Shown: piece by piece, positions 11,976 to 60,990 of the stretch | Position numbering within the stretch: the stretch's first letter is position 1 | How the letters are laid out: the number at the start of each line of letters is the position of its first letter | DNA from: Octopus sinensis | Taxonomy: Eukaryota | Length of the DNA stretch: 62,637 bases | Direction: 5' to 3' | Assembly: GCF_006345805.1 (NCBI RefSeq) | Contig: NW_021832978.1 | Coordinates: 1 to 62,637, forward strand | Translations under genes and position numbers: made by a program | The notes under the pieces: model-generated | The model's database searches: none | The model's input: the letters and a program-made list of their open reading frames with translations, nothing else | What the model was told of the DNA's origin: nothing

Positions 11976-12010
11976 TCACGTTTCCACACCATCACCTGCC
12001 TATTTGTCTG

Positions 12011-12066
<56 letters not shown>

Positions 12067-12067
12067 C

Positions 12068-12135
<68 letters not shown>
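12011..12135. repeat. (TATC)n microsatellite, left flank of LINE
   Basis: About 31 nearly perfect units. Confidence 0.97.
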
Positions 12136-15657: not shown

Positions 15658-15709
<52 letters not shown>

Positions 15710-16656: not shown

Positions 16657-16689
<33 letters not shown>

Positions 16690-24700: not shown

Positions 24701-24879
24701 TATGTAATTAATGGTTAGTTAAATAATTAGCTTCTGGTCAAATAATTAGCGAGAGAGAAATTTGAAGGTAAATCTGAAAATATAATTATTTGTAAGAAAG
24801 TAAGGTTTCTTAGGGATAAAGGGAGAGGAAGAGGGAGGGGTAAGATATAAGGAGGTGGGAGAGATAGAGAGAGAAAGAA

Positions 24880-24989
24880 AGAAGAAAGAGTGAGAGAGAG
24901 AAACCCTAGGGGAGGGGAGGGATATATTAATGTATGAGGAAGCAAGAGAAAGATGAGAGAGTGGGAGAGAGAGAGAGAGACAGAATGTG

Positions 24990-25027
<38 letters not shown>

Positions 25028-26340
25028 GGAAGAAGAGTGAGAGAGAGAAAACCCTAAGGAAGGGGATAGGGATTATTGTATGAGGAAGCAGGAGTGGGAG
25101 GAGAGTGGGAGGAGAGAGAGAGAGAGAGAGAATGCGTGAGAGAGAGAGAGAGAGAGAAAGGAAGAAAGGGAACGAGAGAGAGAAACCCTAGGGAAGGGGA
25201 GGGATATATTAATGTATGAGGAGGCAGAGAAAGAATGAGAGTGGGATAGAGAGAGAGACAGAATGCGTGAGAGAGAGAGAGAGAGAGAGATAGAAAGGAA
25301 GCAAGAGTGAGAGAGAGAAACCCTAGGGAAGGGGAGGGATATATTAATGTATGAGGAAGCAGAGAGTGGGAGTGAGAGTGGGAGAGAGAGAGAGAGAGAG
25401 AGAGAGAATGCGTGAGAGAGAGAGAGAGAGAGAAAGGAAGAAAGGGAACGAGAGAGAGAAACCCTAGGGAAGGGGAGGGATATATTAATGTATGAGGAGG
25501 CAGAGAAAGAATGAGAGTGGGAGAGAGAGAGACAGAATGCGTGAGAGAGAGAGACAGAGAGAGAAAGAAAGGAAGAAAGAGTGAGAGAGAGAAAGCCTAG
25601 GGAAGGGGAGGGGTATATTAATGTATGAGGAAGCAGAGAAAGAATGAGAGTGGGAGAGAGAGAGAGACAGAATGCGTGAGAGAGAGAGAGAGAGAGAAAG
25701 GAAGGAAGAAAGTGTGAGAGAGAGAAAGCCTAGGGAAGGGGAGGGATATATTAATGTATGAGGAAGCAGAGAAAGAATGAGAGTGGGAGAGAGAGACAGA
25801 GAGAAAGAAAGGAAGAAAGAGTGAGAGAGAGAAACCCTAGGGGAGGGGAGGGATATATTAATGTATGAGGAAGCAGAGAAAGAATGAGAGTGGGAGAGAG
25901 AGAGAGACAGAATGCGTGAGAGAGAGTGAGAGAGAGAAAGGAAGAAAGAGTGAGAGAGAGAAAGCCTAGGGAAGGGGAGGGGTATATTAATGTATGAGGA
26001 AGCAGAGAGTGGGAGAGAGAGTGGGAGAGAGAGAGAGACAGAATGCCTGAGAGAGAGAGAGAGAAAGGAAGAAAGAGTGAGAGAGAGAAACCCTAGGGAA
26101 GGGGAGGGGTATATTAATGTATGAGGAAGCAGAGAAAGAATGAGAGCGGGAGAGAGAGAGAGACAGAATGCGTGAGAGAGAGAGAGAGAGAGAAAGGAAG
26201 GAAGAAAGAGTGAGAGAGAGAAAGCCTAGGGAAGGGGAGGGATATATTAATGTATGAGGAAGCAGAGAAAGAATGAGAGTGGGTGAGAGAGAGAGAGACA
26301 GAATGCGTGAGAGAGAGAGAGAGAGACAGACAGACAGATA
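24880..26340. repeat. GA-rich minisatellite, ~110-150-bp unit, ~11 copies
   Basis: Recurrent (c/g)cctagggaaggggagggatatattaatgtatgaggaagc separated by variable (GA)n. Confidence 0.93.
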
Positions 26341-37789: not shown

Positions 37790-38860
37790 TTATCTCTCAT
37801 AATAAAATAATCCATCAAAACGGTTGTCCAAATTTCCGTAAATCATGATGAAATAATCCGAAACATGTATGGCCTTGATGTGACAGACTTCAATTTCCTG
37901 AGAGCTGAGAAAGATTTCGCATTTGCTGTCTACAGATACTTGGTGGATATTGTTATTAAAATCTGATATGTAAATATTTTCGCCGTGGATGGTCAAGGAT
38001 TTGTTGAAAATGTTTGGAAATGGTTCCTCACCTTGAATCATTAGTTGTTGACTTCTTACCCAATTGTCTCTGTACCAACATACATCGTAATGATCTTCCT
38101 TGTACTTAAGAACGACAATGTCTTCATTCGATGTCACACCCATTGCTACAACCTTCCCCTCCTTCCCTAAATTCACTCGGCCCTTATACTCGTACATTTC
38201 ACCGCCAATGTGAAGTATGTCTGCGTATGTCACATATGGAATATTACTACATTCATTTGGAGCGTCTTCAAACACACATACCAGATTTTTGCCGTTCTTT
38301 TTGTACATTAAATTGTATGGTTTTTCAGTTGTGATCTTTTTTAAAAGACACAAATCTGTATCGAAGAACATCAGTTGTTTATCGTCACGAAAGAGGACTA
38401 CAAATGATTCATCGGTCCATTGACATATATCTTGAGCTTCTTTTTCAAATGTTTGACTGTAAAGCAGATGACCGTCTCCACTTGTGACCATGAGAGTACA
38501 TTTATGGAGGAGCACGACGATACTATTGTCTTGTAACATAATTAGCTTAAAAGCATTAAGAAAACAAAACATCGAATTTGAATCTAGTAAACCAGATAGA
38601 GAAAATGAAAGCGGGAACATTGCTGTTCTATGTGGCAGTCTTCTCACTGATATTTCATCAATTCCTAACATACTTTCCGCTATGTAATTACCACGTCTTA
38701 CTTCTATTCCCTTGATGTACTTCTTCTTTCTCCTCCATCGCCACCGTTTTTAAGTTTGTAAATAATTCATTACTGAACATTCCCTTGTTCTTCTGAGATG
38801 TAATGGAAGGGAAGTGAAGGCCAAAATCAAGATTTGATAACGACATAGATTCCAGAACCT
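37790..38860 (-). CDS. Terminal exon part 3: last NHL-like beta-propeller module (293-aa ORF plus a linker needing two homopolymer corrections)
   Basis: Blade-like motifs (LQDNSIVVLL..VTSGDGHLL..AQDICQWTDESFVVLF; VVAMGVTSNEDIVV). Same frame as the 38861-39655 ORF. Confidence 0.85.
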
Positions 38861-39773
38861 TCATTGGTCCCCATCAATTTTTATAGTATCACATTCAATC
38901 ATGTTGATATGTACACACCAGTAAATATTTCCCACTTTTCTCCATATTATACCATAAGGTACTCGACTTTCCCAAACTTTATATTTCTCCAAGTTTTGTG
39001 ACTTCAGTTGAAATATTTCTTGTCTGTTAGGGAGTGTAACCAAGATATTTCTTTCTCCTGTAAAACATACACCACCAACAAAACTTCCAAAATCTCTATA
39101 ACATAGCAGCTTCCCGTCTTCATCAAATAGTTTAACATTTCCACTATTGGCCATTTCGCACACAACTGTCTGTCCTTCATCAGAGATATCGATATCTTTT
39201 ACTTGAACAGGCCAATTGTTTGTTTGTAACCGTGAAACGGGGAATTTTTGCCGATTAATCTTGTACAAACCTTCAATATATAAGTACGAGTCATAGTTTG
39301 CAACAATCCTCGGGCCTTTACAGTTAATACTGTTGAAATCCAACGGACGTTTATAATGTCTTTCATTTAAGAATATTCTCTTGTATTCACCGTTCTGCAA
39401 CAATGAGACAATGCGATACTTTTTCGTGTTTTCATAGATGTTCTTCCGCCCAGTTATGTACAAATAAGTATCATCGGTTGCCATAGAAATGGGTCGGGAA
39501 TAAATACTGTGCTTAAATGAATATAAATATTGCCCGTTCGGGTTCAGAATAGTGATGAGCCTCTCGGTATTGACAATAATGTTGTCATTAGCAATAACTG
39601 AGATATGGGTGATATTATATCTGTAGCACATCCAAAATAAGTCTATTTCCCTCATAATACGGACAGCTGACTGTATTTCATCGATATATATATAAAACAG
39701 GCCGTTTTCAATTTCGGGTATGCAGGTACCACCACCAACATTACTGCTGCTACTACTACTACTACTACTACTA
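38861..39773 (-). CDS. Terminal exon part 2: NHL-like propeller repeats (264-aa ORF plus upstream extension)
   Basis: VKDIDISDEGQTVVCEMANSGNVKLFDEDGK..VGGVCFTGERNILVTLP. Joins part 1 if one base at 39776/39777 is removed. Confidence 0.88.
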
Positions 39774-39790
39774 CTAACTACTACTACTAC
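39750..39790. repeat. (AGT)n poly-serine coding microsatellite with a 1-bp interruption
   Basis: The plus strand reads ctactaacta at 39771-39780. Confidence 0.95.
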
Positions 39791-42613
39791 TGCTACACAC
39801 CAGTAGATTGTCGGATCGACAAGCGATACAATTGTATCTATTTTCCGTGTGGTAAGTTGCCAAGACCAATGGGAATTCCACTTTTAATGTCAGCAGTTGA
39901 TGGTTATTGGTCGTTATAACCAATGTGTTTGATCGCCAGCAACACATATGTCTAGGGACAACATTTAACTTGATAGAGTCAACGAGTTGACCATCAAAAG
40001 TTAATATCTTAATGTTTTCATTTGTGCTGTCATATAAAGCAACCAGGTTATTTTCTGTAATAACCAAACAACCAATCTCCACTGGATGTTTATCTCCAAA
40101 ACTTTGAGGGGCAACAACTTCATGAGCTTTATCATAAACTGTGAGATCTTGTAGATACAATCTAGAAGACAACATTTCACTGAGACTGATGTTTCTAGAA
40201 AATACATCTACTAGATCGATGAACATGTTAATTTGGCTTCTTGTGACATGATCTTTCACCAGCAAGTCATGCTCATTTACAGCAAACATGCGGCTGTTGT
40301 CTATCAAATGAACACACATTTTATCAATACGTCCACCATAGAGATTGGATTGTGTTTTCCCTTGCGACAGTAAAATATTGGGTATCATCTCAATGCTATA
40401 AGGACCACCGTCATAACCATAGAGATTGGAGGGTGTTTTCACTTCGGATGGTAAAACACTTCTTCCCCTCTTCCTGATGATCTTGTAGAAGAATACTGCT
40501 TTCTTACCAACAATCAATAGCTTTAGTGTTTCATTTTCTAACGATAATGATTTCATTACAAAAGGAATATTAATTTTATGAATTATTTGAACTCGATTAC
40601 AATTTTTAATGTTTAAAATATCTAAATGCGATGGTTTATCGCAATAACAAATAATATGACTTTCACCCAGCTTACACACCCGTACATAAGCCTGGTTTAA
40701 TGCTACACTTATAACTGCCTTTGATACGTTTCCGAAGACCCGTAATTGCTTCTCTAGAGGTAATGTGACGCCTATCTGATTATAATTCCATCGACATACA
40801 TCTGTAGCTGTAGACGGCAGAGATAATCTAGACACAATGTTCCCTTCGTTGGAAATGTATAACAAACAATCATTATATATGTCGGACAACACCAACTGTC
40901 CATTTGCCAGATGACATATTTCACCAATGAGAACTTGGTCATTCTCCTTTTCTTCGAGTCGAATATTTAGATTTTTATTATAAGGGTTTTGAAAGGTTAC
41001 ATGACAGTCTGACCAGTCATGGTACTTGTAAAGAAGAATCCGACTGAGCAGATCGTCCCGCACATAAGCTGTTCCTTGGAAAACAGCAGCGTGACAGCGA
41101 AAGTTTGAAGGAAGTTTCAACTGCCATTTCCTTTGTCCAGTTATATTGTAACAAGTCATCAAAGACTCTCTCCTGAAGATAACATAGAAGTATAATTTGT
41201 CTGTGAAAACATGATGAGGATAGCCATTGAACTCAATGTGTTTCTTGGAAAGCTCCTCACCAAAGCTTGAATAAAATAACAAGTTACGTTTCTTTCTGTC
41301 TACAACTACAAAATTAATTGGAGTAGCAGCAATGGCGACATTGTCATGGTCCAATGAAATTCTGTTTACAATGTCGACATGATCCTTTTTAATCAATAAA
41401 ATATGTACCTCCACTTTACCTTCATTGGTGGTCAGAGCCAAACACCTATTTGATACCATATGACACATTTGGATGTAATTGTTTTCGACGTCTATTAAAT
41501 CACCTTCAGTTAGTTGTGGACAGGTAATATACTGAAGTTTCCTGTCCTCACTAAAAAGGACAAGAAATGTGTTCGAATCCACTCTGCAGAAAACAGAAGG
41601 CTGGAGTTTAAAGGTTAAACATTTTCCACCAAACGGTTGCCCTTCGTCAGTAACTAATATAGCTTTTAGATCCCGATATATAATTACTACTGAAGAGGCT
41701 GACATAGGTAGAATCGTTGTAATGTTGGAGGGGTCATCAATATGGATTTGGTTTATCAGGCTCGGGACATGGTCTTGGTGATGGTAAGACAGCCGAGGCC
41801 AAAAATCTTTATTTGTCCTAATAATATGTACAAGACCAAAACGGTCAGTCAAGTAAATATTATTTGTTGCCACACAAATATATCGAGCTTTTATCCCAAT
41901 TTCTCTTTGGGACACAGCACCGTTTGCTGAAATCTTGTAAATTACATTTCCTTGCACAGCGTAAGAATAATTTCGATATACGGTGAGGTCGGTTGGAATA
42001 TCGATGGAATGGGTCCTCAACTGAAACAAGTGTCTGCCATCTATTGTGTAACAGCTAATTCTATTTATATTAGCTAAGGCTATTAAGATATGATACTGTG
42101 GACCAACTGCTATGTTTCCAACAATTTCTTGTACACTAAATTTTTCTTCAAATTTATTTTTATCCCAGTCTATGAGATATATTGTCTTACTAAACATTTC
42201 TGTCCCTACAAATGTAGAATGTTCGAAATAGGAAATTGTAAAGAAACTATAATCCAGAGATTTTATGTGGAAACTTGATGGATTAATGAAAACTATTTTC
42301 TTGCGGAAAGGAATTGTGGCTAGAACAGTGTGTTCACCAATTCTTGTCATGTCTGTGACATTAGAAGAACAATGAAAATCAAAATCACCGCCTGTTGTGG
42401 CACAACTTATTAACTTCAAATCTGGTGAATAGGTTACTATTCCATTGCAGATTTCAACGATTCTTGAAACTGTGACTAAGTTCTTGGAATCGTTATCGGA
42501 GTCTGTGAGCTGCAATATTTTGGACACAGCTGGGCAAAGGGGACGGAATTTGGATGAATGCGACTTCATAATACTTTTACAGTCAAAACGTGGTATCTGC
42601 ATGTAGTGATCAT
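39774..42613 (-). CDS. Terminal exon part 1: tandem NHL-like six-bladed beta-propeller modules
   Basis: 942-aa ORF extended by a canonical acceptor (tattcag|AT GAT CAC TAC ATG) at 42613, phase 1. It contains molluscan TRIM/NHL-type blades, e.g. IGEICHLANGQLVLSDIYNDCLLYISNEGNIVSRLSLPSTATDVCRWNYNQIGVTLP. Confidence 0.92.
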
Positions 42614-45024
42614 CTGAATAACAATAACAACAGAAATAAAATTATATTAAATTTTCAAAAGACATGAATGGGTAATAATAATTTGTAACAGCAACTTCCT
42701 ACGCAATTCGAGTCACAAAAAATATCAAATCTTCTCAATTTAACGAAAACATTGCACAACATTCCTACCACACCATTTTCAAGACACTTTCCATTTCATT
42801 TATTGTAGATAAACACGGAAATAGCAACATCAGTGGGGTTACAAGCTGAAAACACTGATATACACCAGCGGAGTTTGTTACTGAAGAGCGATATCCATGA
42901 TGATCTGGCTATGTATACCTTGACCACTTCAATTGTGGTTAATACTAGAAGGTCTACACATGTACAACCACATACTGTACAATGAGGAAATACTTTATTG
43001 CATCCCGACTGCTACCACACTCCACCCCACAAAACAAAACACTGTATTTTGTAAGTTAACTCTGTGATGTTTAACAAGATGAAAGAATGGAATATTTGAC
43101 GGGTTAGATCTGGGTGTTTTTTACGGAGGCTGTGACCAGCTGCGTATTGTTATATATATGTGTGTGTGTATATGAGTACTAAAGATGGCCTGAGTAGCTA
43201 TTACACAACCAATCGTAAGATTTATGATCTCTCTCTTTCTCTCTCTCTCTCCCTGACCCCATGTTAGACGTTAAAAATTAGATTAGCCCCAACAACAATT
43301 CTATCAATGAATTAGGTAAATAAAATTCGAATAAACAAAACAGAAATTGCCTTTTACCGATTTAGAGATAACGAATAATTATTGATAATTTATAGTCAAT
43401 AACTTTCTGCACTCCACTTCATTAATGCTGGGCTAATTCTAGATGCTCTGATTTAAAATACCAATTAGTGTTTTATAAATATACAGATATATATGTAAAT
43501 ATTCACAGAAATATATAACCCTGTAATTACCCATGTGATCTTTTAGTAATTACTAGTATTTATGGCAATCCAGAAAGCTGTAATTATCCATTATCTCAGT
43601 TGAGATTTGGTCAGTCTATCTCCTAATATAACATGTATAACTTTGATGTATTTGCAAGTAATTAGCATCCATCGCTACCTACCATCACTACCACTATCAT
43701 CATTTAACGTCGGTTCCCCATTCTGGCAGGGTTTGTACGTTTTGTCAGGGGCTGGCTAGGGAGAAGAATGCACCAGGCTTCACTGTCTCATTTGGCAGGA
43801 TTTTACAGCTTGATACTCTTCCCAACACCAACAACCTTACAGTGGGATCTGGATCCACAAGCACTGGTGGGGGTCACCAAAGAACTTGCAAGACAAAAAG
43901 CCTTTGAGAGGGAGAGCATTGGAGGAGGAGGTGGGCGTGTGTCAGGGGATGACAGGTTCGACTGTGACAGAGGGATTGGAACAGGTGTCTTATAGTAGAA
44001 GACATACATGATTACCCGGTGAGAGGAGGCGGGCAAGAGAAACAGTGAGAGTGAGCAACCAAGGAATGTTAATAAATAATTAAGCACTCTGGTACCTCAC
44101 ACACCGTTGTAACTCAGTCTCCATCATTTACTGTTGTCAGCCTCCACCGCTCCTTCGAATCACTTTTTTAATCCTTATTGTCTCGTATCTTTTAGTCTGC
44201 ATTCCGATTATTCTATAATCTCTTCTTCTCCCATCTTAAACATATCAGTGAACAAACACATCATAGAGTAGTGAGGACTAACTTTCTAATAATTTGGAAT
44301 GTGACTCAACCTCACTAATGTTGGTGCTATGATCAAATGCTCCCACTACACACTAGGAGGTGGTTGTTGGATGAGAGTTGACACCGTAAGTTTGAGAGGG
44401 AGGTTTAATCTTGCCGAGGACATGGCAATCTCTTGTAGTGTTTGTGCCACAATTATATTCACCCAGGACCCTTTGTAAAGTGGTTGGTGATAAGAAGGGC
44501 ATACCACCATGAAAAAGCTGGAATGGTTAATTGAGAGGTAATCCTCAAGCAATCATTATGGGTAGTTTACTGTTATGACATGGACAGTGACCACCCATCC
44601 AGTACATGGGAGCATAGAGAGCAGATGATAAAAGGGAGAGGATGATATCATTTACTGTATTGAAACTTGCAGATAGTGAAAGGGAGCGAGAAAGAGAGAG
44701 AGAGAAATAGAGAGAGAAAAAGAAAGACAGAGAGAGAGCTTGTCTGAGCTGCAAAGCAGCCTTCTACTTGAATAAAGGCAATATTGAATAGATGTAATGG
44801 TTGAATAGTGGACGTAATGACAGTGACAAAAAAACCAGGCTGTTCACTATTGGAACAAGTTTCACCATAACATCTGGTTAAGCAAAAGCGCCAACAACAA
44901 TAATCAATCAGTAAGCTTACTAAAAATGTAAAACGAACAAACACTTTGTCATTAAATCACCCGTTTACCTTTAAACAACAAAATCCTTTTAGTTCCTATT
45001 CTAAAGGACAATATCATTTTCTAC

Positions 45025-45230
45025 TCTAGGCACAAGGCCAGAATCCTTTGGCGACGGAGTCAGTCGATTAGATCGACCCCAGTACGCAACTGGTACTCAA
45101 TTTATCGGCCTCGAAAGGATGGAAGGCAAAATCGACCTCGGTGGAATTTGAACTTAGGATGTAAAGACAGATGAAGTAAAGCTAAGCATTTCGCCCGGCG
45201 TTCTAATGTTTCTGCCAGCTCACCACCTTC
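45025..45230 (-). mobile_element. Intronic tRNA-derived SINE
   Basis: Homologous to 13565-13787. Confidence 0.75.
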
Positions 45231-45760
45231 CCAAAGGACAATATTAACTCTATTCTGTTTTCTAAGTTAGCCATTTTGCCAACAGCGATAACCTTGGTGG
45301 ACATTTTATTAAATTTCAATAATAACAATATTTTAAAAAACAAATTGATGTGGTTACTTGACTGGGAACGAGAGGAGCTGCTGCTTGTTGTATACAAAGG
45401 GAGTGGAAGAGAGCGAAAAAGGGAGAGGACGAGAGAGACTAAAGTGAGATGACAGACGGTACTTATTCTCCTTAAAGGGACAGAACCGCTTAAGGGTTTA
45501 TATTTTATCTTTTGCATATTTCTCCTTATCTTGAGACGCCTTTTATTCTGAGTGGAAGAATATCTGATGCTTCCACTTTTCTATAAAATCCATTTCTTGG
45601 ATATTCCTGTAGTTGTACAAGAATAGAAAAAAAATGTGTAGCTAACCATTCGAAATAAATGTAGCAAAAGAACTTGTTCTCAGTCATTCTGTCAAACAAA
45701 GTTGCTCGGAAAATGGTAAAATTGATAGAAATCAATAAGGTATTGGCAATTTATACTCAC

Positions 45761-45811
45761 CAGCTGGCTCCACCTCTGTTTGGACTTCATTGTCAACAAG
45801 CGTTAAAGTAA
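45761..45811 (-). CDS. Microexon A, 51 nt, phase 1-1: (V)TLTLVDNEVQTEVEPA
   Basis: tttcag acceptor, gtgagtat donor, open frame continuous with the terminal exon. Confidence 0.8.
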
Positions 45812-46613
45812 CTGAAACAAAATTTTCTAAATTTTACACTTTACAGAAAAATGTCTTTATCTTAATTAATAATCTAAATTTTGTTATTCTGTGACATTCC
45901 TGTCATTGATGGTCAACTGGTGACCCGTACGGCTTGGGTCAACATTTTCATACTTCCTATAGGGATACCATGTAATAACTCAATATTCAGGTCCACTACT
46001 AAATAGACTAACCTTCATATATCTCCATATTAAGACATCCCACATAATCTAAGGATCACTCTATTAAGATATCTACATAATCTAATAATTATCTTATATA
46101 ATTATCACTTGATAACACGGATTATCTCTTAGTTTAATTTTCCCTTTCATCTATCGGAGCCCAATCTATGATATGGCATTGTTCTCTCACCTCCAGATTT
46201 CCCTAATGAACTCCCAGGAAGAATGGGACGAAATGGTGAGTAATGATCTTGAAATGTTGAGCCTAACAGTCACTTGGCAGTTTGCTGTGCTTGAGAACAA
46301 CCACCAACCTAAATAAAATAAAGGTCATAAGCGCCTGTTTGTCCCCCAACAATGCCTCCCCAACACATGTCGCATTCTCCTCCATTCTTCCTCATGTACC
46401 TACATGCACATATGATGCCCTACTGTTTCTCATCCCCAACCATATCCACAATTCCTCCTTCCTCTACTACTTTCCTTTCACAAACTTATAAACTAACCCT
46501 CCCTCCCAGATCACTCTCTGTCGTATTTCACCATTTTCTCTATCGACACATGAGGCAGCCATAGAAACAAAGGCAAAATAGACATTTGTGGGCTGCTGTT
46601 ATTTTATACTTAG

Positions 46614-46667
46614 CAACTGGCTCTGCTACCATCGTCTGCACTTATTTCCCTTCAAGCTTTAGATTCT
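46614..46667 (-). pseudogene. Dead microexon, 54 nt: NLKLEGK*VQTMVAEPV
   Basis: Homologous acceptor, in-frame TAA, donor mutated to ctaagt. Confidence 0.7.
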
Positions 46668-46976
46668 CTGAAATAAATATTATTTACACTAAAGTCATTT
46701 TATCATTATCAATAATCTATATTCTGTTATTGTGAGAGATCCCTACCATCAATGGTCTACAAGAGTTCACACAGGTTTCGGTCAATATTTATATACTTTC
46801 AACAGTGGGCCCATTATTTATGCCCTCCACAAAATTGATTGGCATTCCTAAATCTCCGCTCTCAATTAAGACATCTTACATATCTCATTTACTTCTCACG
46901 TATCCACCTTAATAAAGTAGATGAGGTAATGGCAAACTTGATAGAAATCAAAAAGGTAATGTTGATTTATACTCAC

Positions 46977-47027
46977 CAACTGGTTCTACTTCTGTTTGAA
47001 CTTCATTGTCAACAAGTGCTGGCGTCT
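46977..47027 (-). CDS. Microexon B, 51 nt, phase 1-1: (E)TPALVDNEVQTEVEPV
   Basis: Canonical AG/GT; paralogue of microexon A. Confidence 0.8.
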
Positions 47028-47712
47028 CTGAAATAAATATTCTAAATTTTACACTTCATAGAAAAACATCTTTATATTTCCTAATAATCAAAATATTATT
47101 CTTGTGAGGTATTCAGAAAATATTTGAAGATATTTCAATGTCATTAATCCTCCTTAATAAGCAGATATTTTCAGGTGAGCAATGATTGCTACTAAACAAG
47201 TGGAGCAGAAAGTGATATCAAGTATCCTAAAAACCTTGTACAAAACCTCATTAACTATACGTGTCATTTCATCCACATATTATTGCAAAGGAATTATATT
47301 TGGAATAGTACTGACTCTCAAGAATATATAAGCAAGACAGAGATATAAATCAAACTGGAAGCGCCAAATTTATTTTGCATTATGTTTTGATTTTAACTCC
47401 ATCACAGTTTGTGCCTTGATCCGATTGCCTCAAGACGTGTCTCTCAGCAAGCTACCGTACCATTGTCTTCAAGCTTTTGGCATGATTTCTCTTGCTATTT
47501 GTAACTTCACTTGTTTCTGCTGATCATTTACAAACGATACAAAGCACTACTTATTCGATTTAAACCACATTTTTGTCGAAATAATGTGTTAATCCAGTCT
47601 AACCAGAATTATTTGCATATCCTTCTGATCACACCTTAATATTATTATTAATCCATGAATGCCTCAAGTGAAGGTAAAATTGATAGAAATCAATTAGTGA
47701 CTTTATACTCAC

Positions 47713-47784
47713 CAACTTGCTGTGATGCATCTTTTGAAGTAAATGCCTCTGTCTGGACTTGCTTGTTCTGAGACTTGGGAAACC
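47713..47784 (-). CDS. Microexon C, 72 nt, phase 1-1: FPKSQNKQVQTEAFTSKDASQQV
   Basis: tatttatttcag acceptor, gtgagtat donor, open frame. Confidence 0.75.
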
Positions 47785-47894
47785 CTGAAATAAATATTTC
47801 AAGGTTTTTAAATTTTATTATAAAATATTTTAAATCTAGATATTAATAATATATATTTAATTATTGTGGGACTTTCTGATCATCAATGGGCAGC

Positions 47895-48080
47895 CTGTGT
47901 ATGAACAGCTGTGTATGCTACATAGTAGTGAAATGTATGTTGTGAACACAGAGGACGTGTAAAGGCTTGAACAAAATGGAACCAGCATGCTCCACTGGAT
48001 GGTCACTGTCAGTGTGCAGGTATAAAATGCTGACATGTTTTAAGATAAAAGTCGAGAGTTATCACGTGTATGTAGTACGC
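47895..48080 (+). mobile_element. Intronic RTE-clade LINE fragment
   Basis: NTEDV*RLEQNGTSMLHWM resembles TSEDMRRLETNKASMLRWM of the 34560-35270 copy. Confidence 0.55.
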
Positions 48081-51000: not shown

Positions 51001-51256
51001 ACATCGGATATTTTGTGAAATTACAATAATATCGATATGTTTTATTGGCTAAACTTGCAAAATGACCATTCCGAAATATAATAATATCTGTTTCAACACA
51101 CGACTTCACATAAAAAAATCTTGCACAACAAATATTTAATAGAATTATTATGCATCAAACTTTTCAAATGCAAAATGTGGATTGGAAGATGTTGTCAGTC
51201 ATTCAGTAAAGTTAAAATTTACAGTAATCGTTAAGGTAATGATATTTTATACTCAT

Positions 51257-51319
51257 GATCAAATGATTCTGTTTCAAGCATAGGAAAGATTGGAGACAGT
51301 ATTGTTTGCGACTGTGTGT
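51257..51319 (-). pseudogene. Probable dead microexon D, 63 nt: TQSQTILSPIFPMLETESFD
   Basis: Homologous flanks, but acceptor reads ccg and donor reads atgagt. Confidence 0.55.
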
Positions 51320-51450
51320 CGGAAAAATATATTTTCAAGTTTTACATTTTACACTATAATGTGATTATATCTATTAATCAAAAATATTCCATTACCGTAA
51401 GATATCTTTATTTTCAATGGTCAACGGCTGACCACTATGCTTTTGGTCAG

Positions 51451-52469
51451 CACGCTTTCAATATAACAAAACTCTATATTAAGAGCCACCAAAATATTAA
51501 CTAATTTCCTATCTATACTCTCTGTATTCAGACATCAAATATAATTTAACAATATTGTAATTATTTAATTTCATTGTCTCTTTATAACAATATTTTGCTT
51601 TTAGTTTTCTCTTTCCTTCCGTATTTCTCTGATTTTCAGGGAGTTTAAGGCACAGGTATAAATAGAGGATAACTCAACTACTGAAAACCATTGCTATAAA
51701 GAGATAATTACGTGAAGTATTTGCAATATTGTTCAATTATGTTGGATGTCACAGTACATTACATAGATATGTGAAAGTTGGTCTCAAAACGAAGCTGGAT
51801 TGGACCAATCGCATAAATCTCTTCAACGACACCGATTTACCTGCAATTTACAGCAGGTGTGAAAGCTGGTACACAACGAAGATGGAGGATGTGAGTCTGA
51901 TAATGGCCAAAATCACAATCGAAAAATCGAGGTTATGGAATGTTGCTAAATTTGCACATCAGGAGTGAGGCGATCATAGAGAAATCAGGTGTGAGAGACA
52001 TCATCACTAAAAACTTATGACAAAATTTCAGATGGGACAGGTAGCCAGCTCACTGAAATTATTTAGGGATGCACAGTTGTTGAGAGTTATATACGCGAGC
52101 AGAGGAGGTCACTGAGAGCGAATCCAAAAGTGAGTGTTTGACGAAATACGACATGCTACGTAGGTGAGAAGGTCAAGATGAAGACAGAAGTGGAGGATGC
52201 ACTGTGTTCTCTGGTGTCGTCAATACACTCAGTCAGTCGACCATGGTCAAGGTGGTATTTCTGTCACATCTATGACATAGCGTTTTCACCTCTACCGTAG
52301 TAAACCTCACGAACCAAACTTTTCGTTTTCTGCTCAACTCCAATGACAAGCAAGTTGATAACCATACATCTATCTACAAAAACTGGTCACACTACTTACC
52401 GTTAGACAGAAAGTACCTGCTCTCTCCGTGAAACATTGGTTTTGGTAATCTTTGATTTTAACTGCCCAC
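51451..52469. repeat. ~1.02-kb near-identical intronic duplicate, copy 1 (contains an RTE-like fragment)
   Basis: Matches 54963-55981 at a constant 3512-bp offset. INLFNDTDLPAIYSRCESW resembles the RTE LFNSTVLPA..YGCETW motif. Confidence 0.92.
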
Positions 52470-54755
52470 ATCAACCTGCGTATTTGTGACGCATCTATGA
52501 CATGGCGTTTTCACATCTACAGTAGAACTCACTAATCAAACATTCTTATAATTTTCTGCTCACTTCCAATGTCAACAAGGTTAATCATCAAATATCGATC
52601 TTCAAATACATTTCACACCACTTCATTTTAGACAACTAGCACCTACTCTCTGCGTGAAACATTGCTGCTGCTAATCTTTAAGTTTAACCGCTCTCACCAA
52701 CGTTCGCCAGAATGTCTTCTGATACAGAAGATGTGTGAAACATCCTTACAGAAACAGTTTTCTTTCCAGATGAGTAATAATTTATTCTACTAAGTTGTTG
52801 GCGAAATTGGTATCAGGTACCCCAAAAACTACACCGCCGTTTATCTACACATCATTGCATAAAATGCATCCGAAATGGTACATAATAGAACTGATTCTCA
52901 AAAATACATACGCAAGCCATGTCAGAAACATCATATACTATATTTACTTTGAGGTTTTCACAAATCTATTGCTTATAAACCATTATCGATTTTTACCATG
53001 ATCTCAATATCTCTATTCTTACTAGACAATAGGGAAGCCTACCAGCATACGAAATACTTACAAATTTGTCATTAAATTATGTCATGGTTTCTCTTGATAC
53101 GTTGTATATCACTTGTTTCTGCTGACCTTTGACAATTAAAAAACCGTATTATTTATTTGCATTAAGTCTTAATCTCGACCAAGGATTAAATCCATTCCGG
53201 TTGTCCAAAACTATTAGCATATTGTTTTGATCTCTTTCCCTTATTTGTATGTCATCGATGATGTTTCTTCAGCCATATCTGCTGAGCAGTCTGCTGATCT
53301 GAGTAACATCTCATTAACAAAGACTGACATTTTGCATCCTACTCTAGTTTCACGCCAATCCTACTCTCTGTATAATATGTGTGTAACGAATAGCATTTGG
53401 AAATTGTTAAACCAACTCTTCGTCATATTTTAAAATCCTCCTGTATGTAAACGAAGGCCATTGCTTTTCTCGATGGTTTATGTTGTTCACATCCCTAAGC
53501 ATTAGACTGATCCAACCATACAACATTCAAATCACTTCTATTTTTCTATGTGTGTTGGTCCCACTTTTACAAGGCATGTCCCAAACACTCAGGATGTCAA
53601 CGAATCCTTTTGCAGTCACACTTTCAGTCTCATTAAAGTTATTTTGTCGATGTGTAGTTGATCTCTGACCATGGAAATCTTAGCAATCATAATTGCAATC
53701 GGTGCCAACTTGCGAATTAGTTTCGCTTTAGCTTAAATTGTACGCAAAATCTTTCTCTCTTCCTCCAGCCATCAATCACACCAACTTTATACCCGAAAGC
53801 TCCACCATTATGTGATGCCTACAACAAAACCTTGTACAAGACTTGAAACTTTCTAATGTACAGCCTCACCTTACCTTATACCCAAAGATAACTACTTCTT
53901 TCCTGCTGCAATCCTCAAGCTCAAATTCTTCGTTCCTGATTTTGTTGGACATTTTCTTAGAGAGACGATAATATTTCACATGCTTTGCAACAATAAAATG
54001 CACCTAGAACCCTTTAGAAAGTGGTTGGTGTCAGGAATGGCATAGCACTACATGAAAGCAGTGATGTTTAAGTGAGATATGTTCCTCTACGAATGAAGAA
54101 GGGAAGTAGTTCTGAAGAAGAACTGACTTGGACAGCGACAACTCATCTAGTCCATAGGAGCCTGGAAATCTAACGATAAGTGTCGGGGTTGTTACCTGTG
54201 ATTCACTTGCATCGTGCAACCTGTATCTTTCATGAAGTAAGAAAGGCAGATACCGATTATCACAGTAGCAAAGAAATGTTTTCTATTCGGAAAAGACAAT
54301 GTGTAGTGGATTGTAATAATGAAATTACTACCAGGTAACATAACAGAGAGTTTACACTTGGAACGCATTTCATTGCAATTCTTCTAGATTATGAGAAGCA
54401 TCCGTTTAAATAGCAACAATAACAATAATAACCTTCAAGTAAACATGATAAAAAGTGTGACAAAAACGGCTGTCATTAACTCTAAATTTATATTCCTAAA
54501 CAAATTAGCTTAGTTCTCTCTTTCTCAAAACTATACAAAATATATTCCCGTTTCAATTTTCCATTTTACAAACCACTCTAACCTCGTTGGATATTTTGTG
54601 AACTTTCAGTAATATCGATATATTGAATAGAATTATTATACAACCTTTCGAATCTAATTAGGGATAGAATCTGTACTCAGTCGTTCTAACATACAAAAGC
54701 TCGAGATAAATTGAAATGTATAGAAATCAGTAACTTAATATTATTTCATACTTAC

Positions 54756-54842
54756 ATTCTTCCTCTGATTCATCTACTCCAGAAGATGATTGTAAACCGG
54801 AATCGGTACTGGCTCCGGGTACTATACTTGCTGTTGAATGTT
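54756..54842 (-). CDS. Microexon E, 87 nt, phase 1-1: (E)HSTASIVPGASTDSGLQSSSGVDESEEE
   Basis: tattcatttcag acceptor, gtaagtat donor, open frame. Confidence 0.75.
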
Positions 54843-54962
54843 CTGAAATGAATATTTTCAAGATTTGCGTTGTATAGCATGATGTGCTTATCTTTGTTAA
54901 TAATCTATATTTCACTATTGTGACTTATTTCTATTGTCAATGGTCAACGGCTGACCATTATG

Positions 54963-55981
54963 CACGCTTTCAATATAACAAAACTCTATATAAAGGGCCA
55001 CCAAAATATTAACTAATTTCCTCTCTTTACTCTCTGTATTCAGACATCAAATATAATTTAACAATATTGTAATTATTTAATTTCATTGTCTCTTTATAAC
55101 AATATTTTGCTTTTAGTTTTCTCTTTCCTTCCGTATTTCTCTGATTTTCAGGGAGTTTAAGGCACAGGTATAAAGAGAGGAAAACTTAACTACTGAAAAA
55201 CAGTGCTATAAAGGGATAATTACGTGAAGTAATTGCAATATTGTTCAATTATGTTGGATGTCACAGTACATTGCATAGATATGTGAAAGTTGGTCTCAAA
55301 ACGAAGCTGGATTGGACCAATCGCATAAATCTCTTCAACGACACCGATTTACCTGCAATTTACAGCAGGTGTGAAAGCTGTTACACAACGAAGATGGAGG
55401 ATGTGAGTCTGATAATGGCCCAAAGCACAATCGAAAAATCGAGGTTTGGGAGTGTTGCTAAATTTGCACATCAAGAGTGAGGCGATCATAGAGAAATCAG
55501 GTGTGAGAGACATCATCACTAAAAACTTATGGCAAAATTTCAGATGGGACAGGTAGCTAGCTCACTGAAATTATTTAGAGATGCACAGTTGTTGAGAGTT
55601 ATATACGCGAGCAGAGGAGGTCACTGAGAGCGAATCCAAAAGTGAGTGTTTGACGAAATACGACATGCTACGTAGGTGAGAAGGTCAAGATGAAGACAGA
55701 AGTGGAGGGTGCACTGTGATCTCTGGTGTCGTCAATACACTCAGTCAGTCGATCATGGTCAAAGTGGTATTTCTGTCACATCTATGACATAGCGTTTTCA
55801 CCTCTACCGTAGTAAACGTCACAAACCAAACTTTTCGTTTTCTGCTCAACTCCAATGACAAGCAAGTTGATAACCATACATCTATCTACAAAAACTGGTC
55901 ACACTACTTACCGTTAGACAGAAAGTACCTGCTCTCTCCGTGAAACATTGGATTTGGTAATCTTTAATTGTAACTGCCCAC
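54963..55981. repeat. ~1.02-kb near-identical intronic duplicate, copy 2
   Basis: See 51451-52469. Confidence 0.92.
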
Positions 55982-56222
55982 TTCTACGTACATCAGAATG
56001 TCATCTAATGTAGAAAATATTTGAAGACCCCTGAATGAAATAGATTTCATCCCAAGTGAGGAATAATTAATTCTACACAGGTGTAGGAGAAAGAAATATC
56101 AGATGTCCCCCAAAACTGTTACCACCTAATTTACTTCATATAAGTTCATGGTAAATTTACTATCAGTGAAATATGACAGAATCTTTATGGAAATCGATAA
56201 GGTAATATAAATTTAAACTCAC

Positions 56223-56273
56223 CATGAAGTTTTCTACTGAGTAGTCTCCTTCTGGCTAAATTTCTTCTATAAT
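56223..56273 (-). CDS. Microexon F, 51 nt, phase 1-1: (D)YRRNLARRRLLSRKLH
   Basis: tattcatttcag acceptor, gtgagttt donor, open frame; Arg-rich. Confidence 0.7.
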
Positions 56274-56784
56274 CTGAAATGAATATTTTCACGTATTACA
56301 TTTTATTGTATGAATTGGTTATATCTCTTAATCTATATTTTGATATTCTTCGACATTTATATCTTAAATGGTCAACGGGTGACCACTATATCTTTGGTGA
56401 GCGACTCATACTGTTTACCACAATATTTAGAGCCTTCAAAATATGCGCAAATTTCCTACATATCCCCTCTGTATTTAGATATCCAGCATAATTTATCAAG
56501 ATTGAAATTATTTAATTCAATTACCTCTTTATAACGGTATTCTTCATTTAGTTATGCCTTTCCTTTCGTATCTCCCTGCATTTGAGCGAGTTTAATGTAC
56601 AGATATAAGAGAGCAAAACTAAACTAATGAGAAACAGTGTTATAAAGAGATAATTACGTGAAGTAATTGCAATATTGTATAAATTATGTCGGATGTCGCA
56701 TTACAGTGCGGTGATATATATCCGTAATCAAGCGATCAGAGAGAATTCTGGTGAGAGCGACATCATCACCAAATGCAGAAGGAA

Positions 56785-57143
56785 GAAGTGTTGTATTACT
56801 CTTGAATAGTGTCCTGATGTCATATGGGCAGCATATCTTTTGTATCTTTTCGGAGAGGCCTTTCACATAGGGTAGACAGACTGTGGACAGTTCATTGGTT
56901 TCATCCTCTTTTTTCGTCATAATTGGAGGGGATTGTATGTTTTTGGGTAGTTGTTGCTTAATAGATTGTTAATTAGCTTGATCATTTCTTCGTGGTGGGT
57001 TTCACGATCGACACTTATATTCTTAGTCGATGTTTTAGGCACTGAGCAATCCCTCTCTTTACACTGTATGGATGGTAGGAAATGAAGTTGAAGTATCGTC
57101 CAGTAAAGGTCAGTTTGCGGTATACGGATGTCCTGAATCCATA
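56785..57143 (-). mobile_element. Intronic Penelope-like fragment
   Basis: Close match to 19621-19981 (LSTVCLPYVKG.SEKIQKI; HEEMIKL.NNLLSNNYPK). Confidence 0.88.
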
Positions 57144-58209
57144 ATTTATTGTATTGTATCTTGCAGCAAATATTTATCCTGAAGAGAGTGAGACAATGGT
57201 TGTCCCAGCAGGAAACCAAAGTCTTCTTCTTGGACAAAGACAACGTTTAGTGCAGGTAATGATAGATTTACTTTCAGTGAAAAAAGTATGTTCACAGTTG
57301 GAACAAATTTCATTGTGACTCTGCGAGATTATGAGAGACATCTGCCTAAACAACAACAACAATAACAATAACTGCCTCTCCATAAACAGTCATAATGAAA
57401 AACAAACAAAATCCTAATTCTCCTGCTTACACTTAACCCATGGCCTGCCATGAGCCCCATTTGAGGATCTGATAAAAATAGTTTCACTGCCGGTTGTTCG
57501 TTGTATTTTAAGTGAATTGCTTGCTTACATTGCATTTGTAGAGGTGTGTTTAACAATATTTAGTAATTAAATTTTGTCATTATTAACTCTGGCTAATTCT
57601 AGAGGACATTTATATCACAAATCGCAATTTTTGAACTACAAAAATATTGACTGTTTTGAAAAGTTCTTTTGTCTTTTCTTGCATTTCCCTTCTATATCAT
57701 TCATTGATATTTCATACACATTCGCATTTGATACTCTAGTTTCAGAAAAACTAAAATCTTTATTATTGCAATTGAATAGAAAAGGATAAATATGTTTTTT
57801 CTCAGCGATCCCCATTTGGGACTTATCGAAACAATTATCATAATTTCCAAAATAATTCACATATGAAGAAAATTTAAATGCTATATATGATTTTTAACTC
57901 CTGAGACATCAGGCAAAGCCAAAAAGTATAAATAAAAGTTTGAAACTTAAGGGTTAAACAGCATTATTAGTTTCATGATCAAATGACAAAATCAACTCTA
58001 TTGTGTCCTCTATTTTCAACCGTACTAACTTGGAGCGATATTTTATAAACTTTCAGCAATATCGATATCTTTAACAGAATTATTATACAGCTAATCTTTC
58101 AACTTGAAAGTAGGAGTGGAATCCATTTTCAGTTATTCTTTCAAACACAATACACCCAGGTAAATTAAATCTTATAGAAATCAATTGGGAACTCTTATTT
58201 TATATTCAC

Positions 58210-58263
58210 CACTTTGCTCGGATGTAGGCTCTAATAATTGTAAATCTGTTTGCACTCCCTTGT
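58210..58263 (-). CDS. Candidate microexon G, 54 nt via a cryptic acceptor: (D)KGVQTDLQLLEPTSEQS
   Basis: Donor gtgaat is intact. The homologous acceptor reads ctg, but a downstream caaag gives a frame-preserving exon. Confidence 0.45.
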
Positions 58264-59663
58264 CTTTGGAGATACAGAAATAAACATTTACAAGTTTTAC
58301 ATTTAATAATAAAATTTCTTTATCTTTATTTTTATTAAACTCTATCTTGTTATTGTGAGACATTCAATTCCTGTTGTTACTGGTCAACTGTTGACCATTA
58401 TGGTTTTGGTCAATATTTCTGTACTTTCTAAAGTGGTCCCATGTAATAGCCCAATATGTCCACAATAAAACAGACTAACATTCCTAAATCCACCCTCTCC
58501 CTCTCTTTCTCTCTCTCTCTCTCTCTCACACTCTCTCTCTCTAAAAACACATTAAATATTCTAACAATGTTGCAATTATCCCGTTTAATTAACACTTGAT
58601 AACAGTTTTCTCTTAGCTTTGTCTTTCTCTTCTTATAACTGTGCCAAACCTATGGCATGGCACTGTCCTCTCATCTCTAGAATTCACTAATCAACATTCC
58701 TCTCTAGTTAAGTAAAACTGAGGCCATAAAGATGTCCTTTATGTGTATACACTCCACTCCGCAACACTGTCTGTCCCCTAAAAACATCTCCACAAGCCAA
58801 ATTGCATACACACTTCCCCAACATGATCCCTAACAAGATATAAAATGTAAGGTAAGGGTACATGATGATGCTATGACAAAATTTGAACGCAACAATCAAG
58901 ACCAAAGGGTGAAACACTCAGAGAACTGTGCCTCTTTTAGCATTAATATCATCTAAAATCTAACAAGTGTGAGAAAAAGAATGACTATATGGATGGTAAA
59001 TGCTGTTCAAACAACGTAATAAGTGTATATTATATATAGTTACAAACAAGGATTTGTGAGATCAAGTCACACAGGGAACTCATATTTAATTCCTATCTTT
59101 ATATTTTATGTCAACGCCAATATTTTGTTTAAATGCAAACAGATGTTCACGGTTCAATACTAAATCTAACATTTAATAAAATTAAGTTCATGATGAATAT
59201 TCTTATACAGAGTTAATATTTAATTAGAATTTTCTAATTTGCAACTACAAAATGTATTCTAACCAGAGACATTCAGGGTACACATCCCCAGAAAATACAA
59301 AATATTACGACAGACATCTGGCTACATAACAACATCAAGAATAACCTATCAGAAAACTTACGAAAGATCTTAGTAGAAAAACAAACAACAATTTTATTAA
59401 TTCACGAGTTTACACCTAAAATAATAAATTATAGTTCCATAGAAGACAATATTAACTCTTTTGTGGCTTTTAATTTATCCATTTTACCAAACATGTTAAC
59501 CATGACTTTATGAAATTTCATATTTTTAATACAATTACTTTAGAGCTAACCTTTAAATGGAAATTAGAAATGGGATTTGTTCTCCACCATTCTAATACGC
59601 AAAATAACTGAGGTGGATGTACAATCTATAGAAATTAATTAAGATCTCTAATTTTAAACTCAT

Positions 59664-59714
59664 CAACTGTCTCTGCCACAGTCTGCACTACCTTCTCTTC
59701 AAACTTTGGACTCT
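59664..59714 (-). pseudogene. Probable dead microexon H, 51 nt: (E)SPKFEEKVVQTVAETV
   Basis: Canonical acceptor and open frame, but the donor reads atgagt. Confidence 0.55.
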
Positions 59715-60850
59715 CTGAAATATGTGTTTCCAAGTTTTATAGTTATTTATAGCACAATCTCTTTATATTTATTAATAATCTATATTTTATTAATGAGAAA
59801 CATTCATATCATCAATGGCCAACCAGCGATCATAATTGTTTTGGTCAATATTTTTATACTTTCAACAGTGGACCCATGTAATAGCCAATATTTAGCTCCA
59901 AAACGAACTCTAGTTGATCTTTGTAAATTTCCTCTCTCTGTTAAGATATCCTACATAATCTAACAATGCTGTAATTATATCACTTAATTATCACTTACTA
60001 ACAGTTTATCTGTAGGCTTTGGTTTCCTTGCTTATATCTATGCCAAATCTATTGCATTTTCAAAACCCTGATCTTCACTAACAACCTGTTTGATTCCAGT
60101 GTCAACAAATTTATTCATCAAAGATATAACAACAAACACATATCACAACCACTTCAAGAAGGGGAAACATACACCTAATCTCTTTGTTAAACATTGTTGC
60201 TGATAATCTTTAATTTTAACTTCACAGTTCAACAGAATGCCATCTTATTCAGGATATATTTGAAGGTTTCATGATCTGGTTGGAACGTGACACTTATGTC
60301 AGAACCAAAACCAAAATTTGAGAGACGAACAAAACTGTGTCTCTGTTAGCCTTGATATCACCCAAAGACCAACACAGCAACATGGAGTTGTGTGTTGAAG
60401 TCTCAAACACTGGTGACACAAACTTTTACTCCTTTAAAATATTCTACTGAATTTAATACTTTGCCAAAGATGACACTGATGTCCTTGTAAGTACTGTTGT
60501 ATTTAATTATCTTCTAATAACTCATAATTAATTATAGAGTTGATGGAGATTTATTAATACTTCAGTTACTCACTAATTATCTTGCAGAATCTTCCATTAT
60601 CTTTATGTTGCAGACTACAACCCTCTTGAAGTGTGACATGTTTCCTACTTGGATAAGGTCAATGTTTGGTGGATGTAGTGTGTGAGAGATATACTATTAC
60701 AGAGAACAGACACTAGGAACACCTTTTATCATAAATCTGCCAGATTATGGCAGACCTCTGTCTACATAACAACATGAAGTATATTATTCTACACAATAAG
60801 GGCAGTGGGACAAGCAGGACAAACAGACAGATCAGCAAAGATTTTCTTAC

Positions 60851-60990
60851 CATCTCCAGTTCTGCTCGTTACAGGTTTCCCGCACTTCAGACATCGTTGA
60901 AGAGAGATTCTCGAACATGTTTCACATGTGACAAAATGCCCGCATGGAAGAAATTTTATTGTGGCCGTTTTATTTCTGCACCACAAACAC
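60851..60990 (-). CDS. RING-HC (C3HC4) exon, Mind bomb/IAP-like E3 ligase domain; phase 2-1
   Basis: ttttgttccacag acceptor, gtaaga donor. CLWCRNKTATIKFLPCGHFVTCETCSRISLQRCLKCGKPVTSRTGD resembles MIB RING1 (PCGH..TC..CS....C..C...V.SRT). Confidence 0.88.

Follow-up and report, generated by a model that had tools for sequence, protein, structure and literature searches.

The window, by which we mean the whole stretch of DNA analysed here, is an unplaced scaffold of Octopus sinensis of 62,637 bp. Its minus strand carries the 3' part of a candidate gene in which an exon encoding a RING domain, a series of linker microexons, and a 4.8-kb terminal exon encoding six tandem propeller modules could be read as one protein. 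All exons described below lie on this strand. The NCBI model for the scaffold, LOC115229669 (P0003, 1030 amino acids), was 100% identical to the window. The reading frame was kept when the RING exon was spliced straight onto the terminal exon (..TSRTGD-DDHYMQIPRF..), and it was also kept via five microexons at 59714-59664, 58263-58210, 47784-47713, 47027-46977, and 45811-45761. The spliced product of the RING exon, the five microexons, and the terminal exon was open over 1,085 codons.

An earlier note, made from the sequence alone, had described this arrangement as GT-AG splicing in a single open frame. The RING exon indeed ends in phase 1, the acceptor at 42613 is a phase-1 acceptor, and the join through the five microexons is in frame; however, the terminal exon as assembled reads as three pieces, and the donor of the microexon at 59714-59664 is AT. 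Other proposals of the note, namely a MIB-like RING, a microexon linker, and a 5' end beyond the window, were confirmed as described in the following two sections.

RING exon and its octopus relatives

The RING exon (60851..60990) comprises 140 nucleotides, the first of which completes a codon, and its end is in phase 1. It is bounded by the acceptor ttccacag and the donor gtaaga, and encodes CLWCRNKTATIKFLPCGHFVTCETCSRISLQRCLKCGKPV, in which eight of the eight zinc ligands are present. The exon matched Pfam zf-C3HC4_3 (E=1.4e-9), and its RING was 59-67% identical to those of octopus proteins that are annotated as MIB1/MIB2-like and carry ankyrin repeats upstream of the RING (ANK-RING proteins). 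In the O. vulgaris sister locus L001, two ankyrin exons, the RING exon, a 44-kb intron, and the big exon follow one another on one strand. Because the nearer ankyrin exon of this orthologous locus corresponds to a position approximately 360 bp past the edge of the window, the 5' end of the gene lies outside it, as do the ankyrin exons seen in L001 and in the paralogues. Judging from the complete set of zinc ligands and from zf-C3HC4_3, it is plausible that the product is a putative RING E3 ubiquitin ligase.

A search with the ANK-RING part of L001 returned small octopus proteins of 186-291 amino acids, named MIB1-like or MIB2-like, in which repeated units, for example EAPKFEDRCVQTEAICQELGAASQAI or ESPKFEEKGVQTVAE, come after the RING. 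Several members end in a C-terminal domain that matched Pfam Death (PF00531) below threshold (P0050, E=3.5e-4; P0035, E=0.03). The window shares with these ANK-RING-linker-Death-like proteins (e.g. P0035, P0037, P0047, and P0050; 'MIB2-like' in RefSeq) a homologous RING exon, a phase-1 donor, and subsequent cassette microexons of the form E[AS]PKFE..VQT.., and several members of the family lie on the same 12-Mb contig of O. vulgaris as L001. Unlike these proteins, the window gene has no C-terminal Death-like domain, the 3' position being taken by the six-propeller exon; tblastn with P0035, P0036, P0037, P0047, and P0050 found no Death-like exon in either the window or L001.

The RING exons of the window (60851-60990) and L001 (14726-14871) differed at 29 of 120 aligned coding bases, with a synonymous divergence (dS) of 0.64 and a non-synonymous divergence (dN) of 0.22. 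The intron directly downstream was 95-100% identical between the two loci, and all eight zinc ligands were retained. Positive selection on the RING exon was rejected and gene conversion preferred, because dS was very high as well; as far as these values go, the divergence resembles the transfer of a whole exon from a paralogous MIB-like gene, by gene conversion or replacement.

Linker microexons

Six copies of the linker microexon, one of them dead, are scattered over the 18-kb repeat-rich intron between the RING exon and the terminal exon, and the five open copies are all in phase 1-1. The first (59664..59714, 51 nucleotides) encodes SPKFEEKVVQTVAETV and has a cag acceptor and the non-canonical donor ATGAGT; it is homologous to ESPKFEEKGVQTVAE of P0033 and to EAPKFEDRCVQTEA of P0031/P0035. 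The second (58210..58263, 54 nucleotides) encodes KGVQTDLQLLEPTSEQS and has the donor GTGAAT, read-through of which gives ..GEYKIRVPN and a stop codon, a C-terminus identical to that of the short isoform P0031. The third (47713..47784, 72 nucleotides), encoding FPKSQNKQVQTEAFTSKDASQQV, has the canonical sites cag and GTGAGT. The fourth (46977..47027, 51 nucleotides), with canonical sites, encodes TPALVDNEVQTEVEPV, and the models P0002, P0056, and P0076 splice exons of this type onto the big exon. It is followed by the dead copy (46614..46667), which has an in-frame TAA and a CT donor instead of GT, and by the last microexon (45761..45811, 51 nucleotides), which has canonical sites and encodes TLTLVDNEVQTEVEPA, matching VTLTLVDNKVQTEVEPV of model P0076.

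Frame compatibility alone is weak evidence for such exons, because 961 open AG...GT phase-1 intervals arise by chance within the 18-kb interval. The microexons are credible because they are homologous to linker exons of paralogous proteins. Furthermore, a conserved donor, in which an exonic G is followed across the splice boundary by GTGAGTATAAA, is common to the window microexons and the ANK-RING family, and its read-through yields the 'GEYK..' C-termini of the short isoforms. On this homology, the microexon linker is a real feature of the octopus ANK-RING family rather than an accidental collection of AG..GT intervals. The intron unit with the VDNEVQTEVEP microexon was found to be tandemly amplified: two good copies lie at 45.7-47.1 kb of the window (45700-47114), and at least five tandem copies lie at about 29-55 kb of L001. 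The number of linker cassettes is therefore copy-number variable between loci or species.

Terminal exon and the six-propeller family

The terminal exon starts at 42613 in phase 1, directly after tattgttattcag and behind a long pyrimidine tract and CAG, and ends with the stop codon at 37792..37790, 4,824 nucleotides in all; the ends given in the earlier note were exact. A word-indexed search with this exon returned 30 proteins, all from Octopus, the homologues scoring E=0. A HMMER profile search of 1.84 billion representative proteins gave 30 matches at E<=0.001, of which 23 were checked for their source by name or cluster look-up, the other seven being mostly short fragments. The checked matches came from O. 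sinensis, O. vulgaris, O. bimaculoides, and Argonauta hians, apart from three marginal ones (E about 1e-4 to 9e-4): the bivalve RING/B-box protein P0082, P0083 (NCBI; NHL repeats and an FGE-sulfatase domain), and P0085 (ENA). The proposed lineage specificity thus agrees with the profile search, in which all source-checked matches but the three marginal ones were octopod.

Intact members of this family have approximately 1,660-1,925 amino acids, no Pfam domain, and no RING. The O. bimaculoides member P0004 (LOC106873774) is encoded by a single exon with one uninterrupted open reading frame (ORF) of 4,989 nucleotides (1662 codons), and P0064, P0086, and P0087 are >90% identical across three Octopus species. 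Canonical members have an N-terminal helical region of approximately 170 amino acids within the same giant exon; in P0013 this domain likewise lies in the giant exon, which is preceded by a small 5' exon. When the profile of 17 near-full-length members was aligned with itself, off-diagonal matches were observed at shifts of approximately 255-296, 520, and 780 residues (E=4e-17 to 7e-7). These matches indicate six homologous modules of approximately 260 amino acids each, from residue ~57 to ~1620, so that the repetition seen in the earlier note is real.

The terminal exon of the window is a member of this group of ~1660-amino-acid octopod proteins, which includes P0004, P0087 (LOC106880634), and GAB1597371 of A. 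hians. Identity to these proteins was 55% over modules 1-4 and ~40% over modules 5-6, and about 1,500 residues in six modules are encoded in the same order by one giant exon. Unlike its relatives, the window exon lacks the helical N-terminal region and an uninterrupted frame, starts at a splice acceptor, and contains a poly-serine microsatellite that is missing from canonical paralogues such as P0004. No remnant of the helical domain was found upstream of the acceptor at 42613. The open frame begins just nine codons upstream of this acceptor, the acceptor coincides with the point at which homology to the family starts, and it is 100% conserved in four copies that are themselves ~98% identical overall. 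By these comparisons, the terminal exon is a 5'-truncated copy of the octopod-only giant exon.

Predicted fold of the modules

The AlphaFold2 model of the open 945 residues of the window was all-beta, with a mean predicted local distance difference test (pLDDT) score of 57 and a score of ~85 in module 1. The top 50 matches listed by Foldseek for this model in the PDB, with E-values of about 1e-18 to 1e-15, were all tandem or multi-propeller structures, among them IFT-A, UTPs, LRP2/4, Sevenless, and DDB1. Module 1 was the sole module modelled singly and gave a pLDDT of 85 and a predicted template modelling (TM) score of 0.81. Among the 50 matches listed for it, the top query-normalised TM-scores were obtained with the NHL domain of Brat (0.71; root mean square deviation 3.6-3.7) and the six-bladed Pizza6 (0.71/0.72). 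The NHL domain of Thin gave 0.65-0.66, and the best E-values were obtained with virginiamycin B lyase. A six-bladed NHL-type propeller fold was thus found in the model of module 1, and the all-beta model with its tandem-propeller matches is consistent with propellers in the remainder of the open part.

The sequence relationship was much fainter. In a PDB sequence search, the NHL chains of TRIM71, TRIM2, and TRIM3 matched the family profile with E of about 0.4 only, and one paralogue, P0068, had a sub-threshold match to Pfam NHL (PF01436; E=0.002, 18.5 bits against a cutoff of 20 bits). Against the propeller assignment, Pfam returned only noise for the three ORF pieces of the window, in which NHL was unmatched at E<=1. 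The "about 5-6 NHL-like propellers" of the earlier note therefore stand as a statement about fold, whereas they are unproven as a statement about homology. No signal peptide or transmembrane region was recognisable in the proteins by inspection by eye.

Frame breaks in the window and in its sister copies

As assembled, the terminal exon consists of three open pieces (42641..39777, 39883..38864, and 38749..37793), which speaks against an intact gene. The open 5' part (39777..42613) covers modules 1-3 and the start of module 4 in ~945 codons. The first frame break, an extra T at ~39776, lies within module 4 in an (AGT/AGC)n microsatellite encoding poly-serine (39743..39794). The 3' part (37790..39776) contains the rest of module 4, modules 5-6, and the stop codon, and becomes readable after corrections at 38863, 38759, and 38709. 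A four-way DNA alignment with sister copies showed four frame-shifting indels private to the window scaffold: the (AGT)n serine run, which is 53 nucleotides shorter than in the O. vulgaris copy L002, and 1-bp deletions at 38863, 38759, and 38709. The length of the serine run differed by 27, 36, and 53 nucleotides among the four copies. From the assembled sequence, translation would stop in the serine run after ~3.4 propellers, and a full protein would be impossible. Established rules of nonsense-mediated decay predict that a premature stop in the last exon escapes it; because the stop sits in the last exon, these rules suggest that the transcript would escape.

At least six copies of the segment exist, namely the window, L003, and L006 in O. 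sinensis, and L001, L002, and the locus of P0055 in O. vulgaris. As far as the fetched sequence shows, L001, L002, and L006 represent segmental duplications, each spanning at least 25 kb with introns and flanks included. Every copy examined had lesions of its own, which again weighs against a functional gene: AAA>TAA and TCA>TAA nonsense codons and a +1 C insertion in L001; a TTA>TAA nonsense codon and a 7-bp deletion in L002; 14- and 26-bp deletions and two 1-bp deletions in L003; and approximately eight frame changes in L006 (O. sinensis VCDQ01005675.1, 14474-18408), at a nucleotide identity of 97.5%. The majority consensus of four copies was an intact exon of 1616 codons ending in ..GLFYYER and a stop codon, and the common ancestor was therefore intact. 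Pairwise dN/dS was 0.22-0.46 at a dS of 0.018-0.043, and the non-synonymous fraction was below a neutral expectation that was set at 0.76 and not derived from computed site counts (p=1e-6 to 0.04). Divergence between the window and L001 was 1.2% in the exon, 1.9% in the upstream intron, and 3.9% in the 3' flank. The low dN/dS and the lower divergence of the exon than of its flanks therefore indicate that purifying selection acted until recently.

These data can also be explained by a gene that is intact in the animal, with the four frame breaks being assembly errors of the long-read O. sinensis scaffold and not mutations, an explanation to which we give slightly less than an even chance. One-bp deletions and microsatellite length differences are typical long-read indel errors. 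The window lesions are of just these kinds, three 1-bp deletions and one microsatellite length difference, with no nonsense substitution among them, and the dN/dS of ~0.3 and the better conservation of the exon than of its flanks fit a gene under constraint. Moreover, the frame changes of L006 resemble error rather than decay at such high identity. Indel errors thus seem to abound in small unplaced O. sinensis contigs, and this bears on the frameshifts of the window. The 14- and 26-bp deletions of L003 do not suit this explanation, nor does the presence of lesions in all six copies examined. The nonsense substitutions of the O. vulgaris copies (AAA>TAA, TCA>TAA, and TTA>TAA) are harder to dismiss as errors, because that assembly, although based on Oxford Nanopore Technologies (ONT) reads, was polished with Illumina reads (PMC10700109), and L002 has in addition the 7-bp deletion. 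For the window copy, the odds thus appear roughly even between a duplicate in recent decay and a live gene whose assembly is riddled with indels.

Public gene models bridge the frame breaks by artificial 'introns', dropping hundreds of codons that are homologous to coding sequence of the paralogues. P0003 skips 40472-38747, and P0025, the model at L001, bridges the breaks likewise.

Junction of the RING exon and the propeller exon

In P0025 the RING is joined directly to the big exon at ..DDHYMQIPRFDC, and P0055, which lies on another chromosome and has a quite different RING, shows the same direct join to DDHYMQIPRFDC. In P0002, P0056, and P0076, the big exon is preceded by one or two VDNEVQTEVEP microexons spliced to it. 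Hence exactly the same acceptor receives upstream phase-1 exons in five gene models, each from a different locus. The transcript proposed in the earlier note, which links the RING to the terminal exon, is reflected in these models in that each type of junction occurs separately; however, the RING, the microexons, and the propeller exon occur together in no single model. Taking the evidence for and against together, it is somewhat more probable that a fused RING-propeller transcript exists than that it does not.

Several further observations weigh against the fused gene. A junction-peptide search for the RING plus the big exon returned one model of 119 amino acids, P0076, and no transcript-derived protein, and cluster look-ups returned no Logan or transcriptome-derived members. 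The NCBI model of this very scaffold, P0003, has no RING and starts at an ATG at 42602, four codons into the big exon. The O. vulgaris annotation was produced with an EVidenceModeler (EVM) pipeline combining ab initio predictions, protein alignments, and transcripts (PMC10700109), and its models are not transcript proof because of this mixture. At their 3' ends, P0055 and P0001 are visibly chimeric, the former with the C-terminal domain/tail of an AGC kinase and the latter with satellite-derived exons. Finally, isoforms of ANK-RING paralogues that end by read-through of a microexon donor are known (P0031, P0033, P0034, and P0044), and the upstream gene could therefore end at 58184 without the big exon.

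These points would be accommodated by two transcription units, a small ANK-RING gene ending in the microexon array (e.g. by the read-through at 58184, ..GEYKIRVPN and a stop codon) and a big exon that is an independent single-exon gene or pseudogene. The single-exon structure of the paralogue P0004, with a start of its own, and the position of the N-terminal domain inside the giant exon of P0013 would agree with such a division, as would the missing upstream exon of P0003, the short isoforms, the partly ab initio and protein-based annotation, and the chimeric models. We nevertheless regard two units as rather unlikely, and the corresponding idea that the RING-propeller joins of P0025 and P0055 are prediction merges of neighbours as unlikely to a similar extent. 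Only nine codons separate the start of the open frame from a strong polypyrimidine/CAG acceptor, which lies at the very point where family homology begins, and the truncated exon lacks the N-terminal domain of its family. In addition, this exact acceptor is used by an independent model at each of five loci, and phase 1 is common to all exons.

An origin of the 4.8-kb frame from a transposon or virus-like selfish element, as might be imagined from the multiple near-identical copies in each genome, the missing Pfam domain, and the repeat-rich surroundings with a fragment of a long interspersed nuclear element, is very improbable and was rejected, since the copies are segmental duplications of at least 25 kb that extend beyond the ORF into introns and flanks, domains of a transposase, reverse transcriptase, or capsid were not found, orthologues are >90% identical across three Octopus species with members in Argonauta, and the fold is a cellular-type beta-propeller array.

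Comparison with known ubiquitin ligases and propeller proteins

TRIM-NHL proteins consist of a TRIM-type RING followed by a B-box and a coiled coil, with NHL repeats at the C-terminus. Like the window gene, they (TRIM71/LIN-41, TRIM2, TRIM3, TRIM32/Thin, and Brat) have a RING upstream of a six-bladed NHL-type propeller as their binding domain. Module 1 superposes on the NHL domains of Brat and Thin at the TM-scores given above, and TRIM71, TRIM2, and TRIM3 were among the few PDB sequence matches of the family profile. In contrast, the window gene has neither a B-box nor a TRIM-type RING but a MIB/IAP-type C3HC4_3 RING after ankyrin repeats, and it has six propellers in tandem instead of one, with Pfam NHL unmatched at threshold. 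In Pfam searches no B-box was found in the ORF pieces of the window or in 30 homologues, and the RING exon showed zf-C3HC4_3 only.

Mind bomb proteins (MIB1/MIB2) have N-terminal MIB/HERC2, ZZ, and REP domains and two or three C-terminal RINGs. The order of ankyrin repeats and C3HC4_3 RING is the same as here, and NCBI calls the octopus paralogues MIB1-like or MIB2-like. Unlike in Mind bomb, there is one RING, which is internal and followed by linker exons and a further domain. Pfam found no MIB/HERC2, ZZ, or REP domain in P0025, P0031, P0032, P0035, P0037, P0047, or P0050, but only ankyrin repeats, one RING, and a weak Death match. In agreement with the earlier note, which had found that the arrangement fits neither system, both a B-box/NHL sequence match and, in the paralogues scanned, the MIB/HERC2, ZZ, and REP domains were missing. 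By domain content, the gene is neither a TRIM-NHL protein nor a Mind bomb orthologue, and two octopus-specific families are joined in it.

Multi-propeller scaffolds such as DDB1, the YWTD arrays of LRP2/LRP4, and the WD40 tandems of IFT-A and UTP proteins share the beads-on-a-string layout and were the top Foldseek matches listed (E about 1e-18). Unlike the array described here, they have another blade type and no RING in the same chain, and no sequence relationship to them was detectable.

A possible origin by exon shuffling

The best explanation of these results, in which our confidence is about even, is that the window contains the 3' part of a young gene, or a duplicate of it, of the O. 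vulgaris/sinensis lineage that was built by exon shuffling, this copy being in decay or mis-assembled. The upstream component would be the chassis of the octopus 'MIB-like' family, with ankyrin repeats, a MIB/IAP-type RING, a variable acidic linker of phase-1 cassettes, and normally a Death-like C-terminus. The downstream component would be the 4.8-kb terminal exon with its phase-1 acceptor, a 5'-truncated copy of the octopod giant exon. With the loss of the helical region by truncation, a splice acceptor would have remained at precisely the point where homology starts; ankyrin repeats, RING, linker, and six propellers could therefore be read as one protein.

We infer from this layout that the exons are spliced together in vivo and that the product has ligase activity and a substrate-binding role. 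By analogy with RING E3 ligases generally and with TRIM-NHL proteins, the RING would recruit an E2 enzyme. The acidic linker, rich in Q, T, and V and 0-93 residues long depending on the cassettes included, would act as a flexible tether, and substrates or ligands would bind to the propeller array, with the ankyrin repeats possibly contributing. The immune role and the receptor function raised in the earlier note are speculative; the single hint is the sub-threshold Death-like domain seen in the sequences of the paralogues, which points loosely to death-fold signalling.

A broader idea, which we consider doubtful and less probable than the two transcription units discussed above, is that octopods may run a modular exon-shuffling E3 system. 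In such a system, an ANK-RING chassis would be combined with copy-number-variable cassettes and an interchangeable Death-like or six-propeller C-terminus, with duplication of loci, exchange of RING exons through gene conversion, and a rapid birth and loss of copies, as would be expected of an innate-immune or surveillance family that evolves fast. The window would then be a live or recently dead member.

Targeted literature searches found no paper describing either octopus family, and no characterised protein is known to us in which a RING precedes six NHL-like propellers in tandem. Should the RING-linker-propeller transcript exist, it would encode such an E3 ligase, and the gene would represent a clean, recent, phase-compatible domain swap by exon shuffling, from a Death-like domain to a propeller array, in a cephalopod-specific expansion. 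The results further provide a predicted fold and a candidate role for an octopod-only family of ~1660-amino-acid proteins without a Pfam domain. It should be borne in mind that every copy examined is broken in frame and that the public gene models hide the breaks.

Other features of the window

On the plus strand at 11953-12966, an ORF of 337 amino acids matched zf-RVT (E=1.6e-6) and represents a fragment of a non-LTR (long terminal repeat) retrotransposon. Two near-identical ORFs of 184 amino acids on the same strand (3941-4495 and 6807-7361) lie at a distance of 2,866 bp from each other, which points to a direct duplication of ~2.9 kb; one of the two copies, that at 3941-4495, was scanned and had no Pfam match. 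Repeat arrays were observed at 15468-16788, 21893-22950, 23890-24601, 24857-26326, and 27960-29902. The (TTCT)n/CT-rich and (GAAA)n/GA-rich arrays lie in opposite orientation and cause extreme strand skews. Other repeats in the window were a 171-bp satellite (4.2 copies), a GA-rich repeat of ~130 bp, and a 121-bp satellite with 16 copies that are 96% identical.

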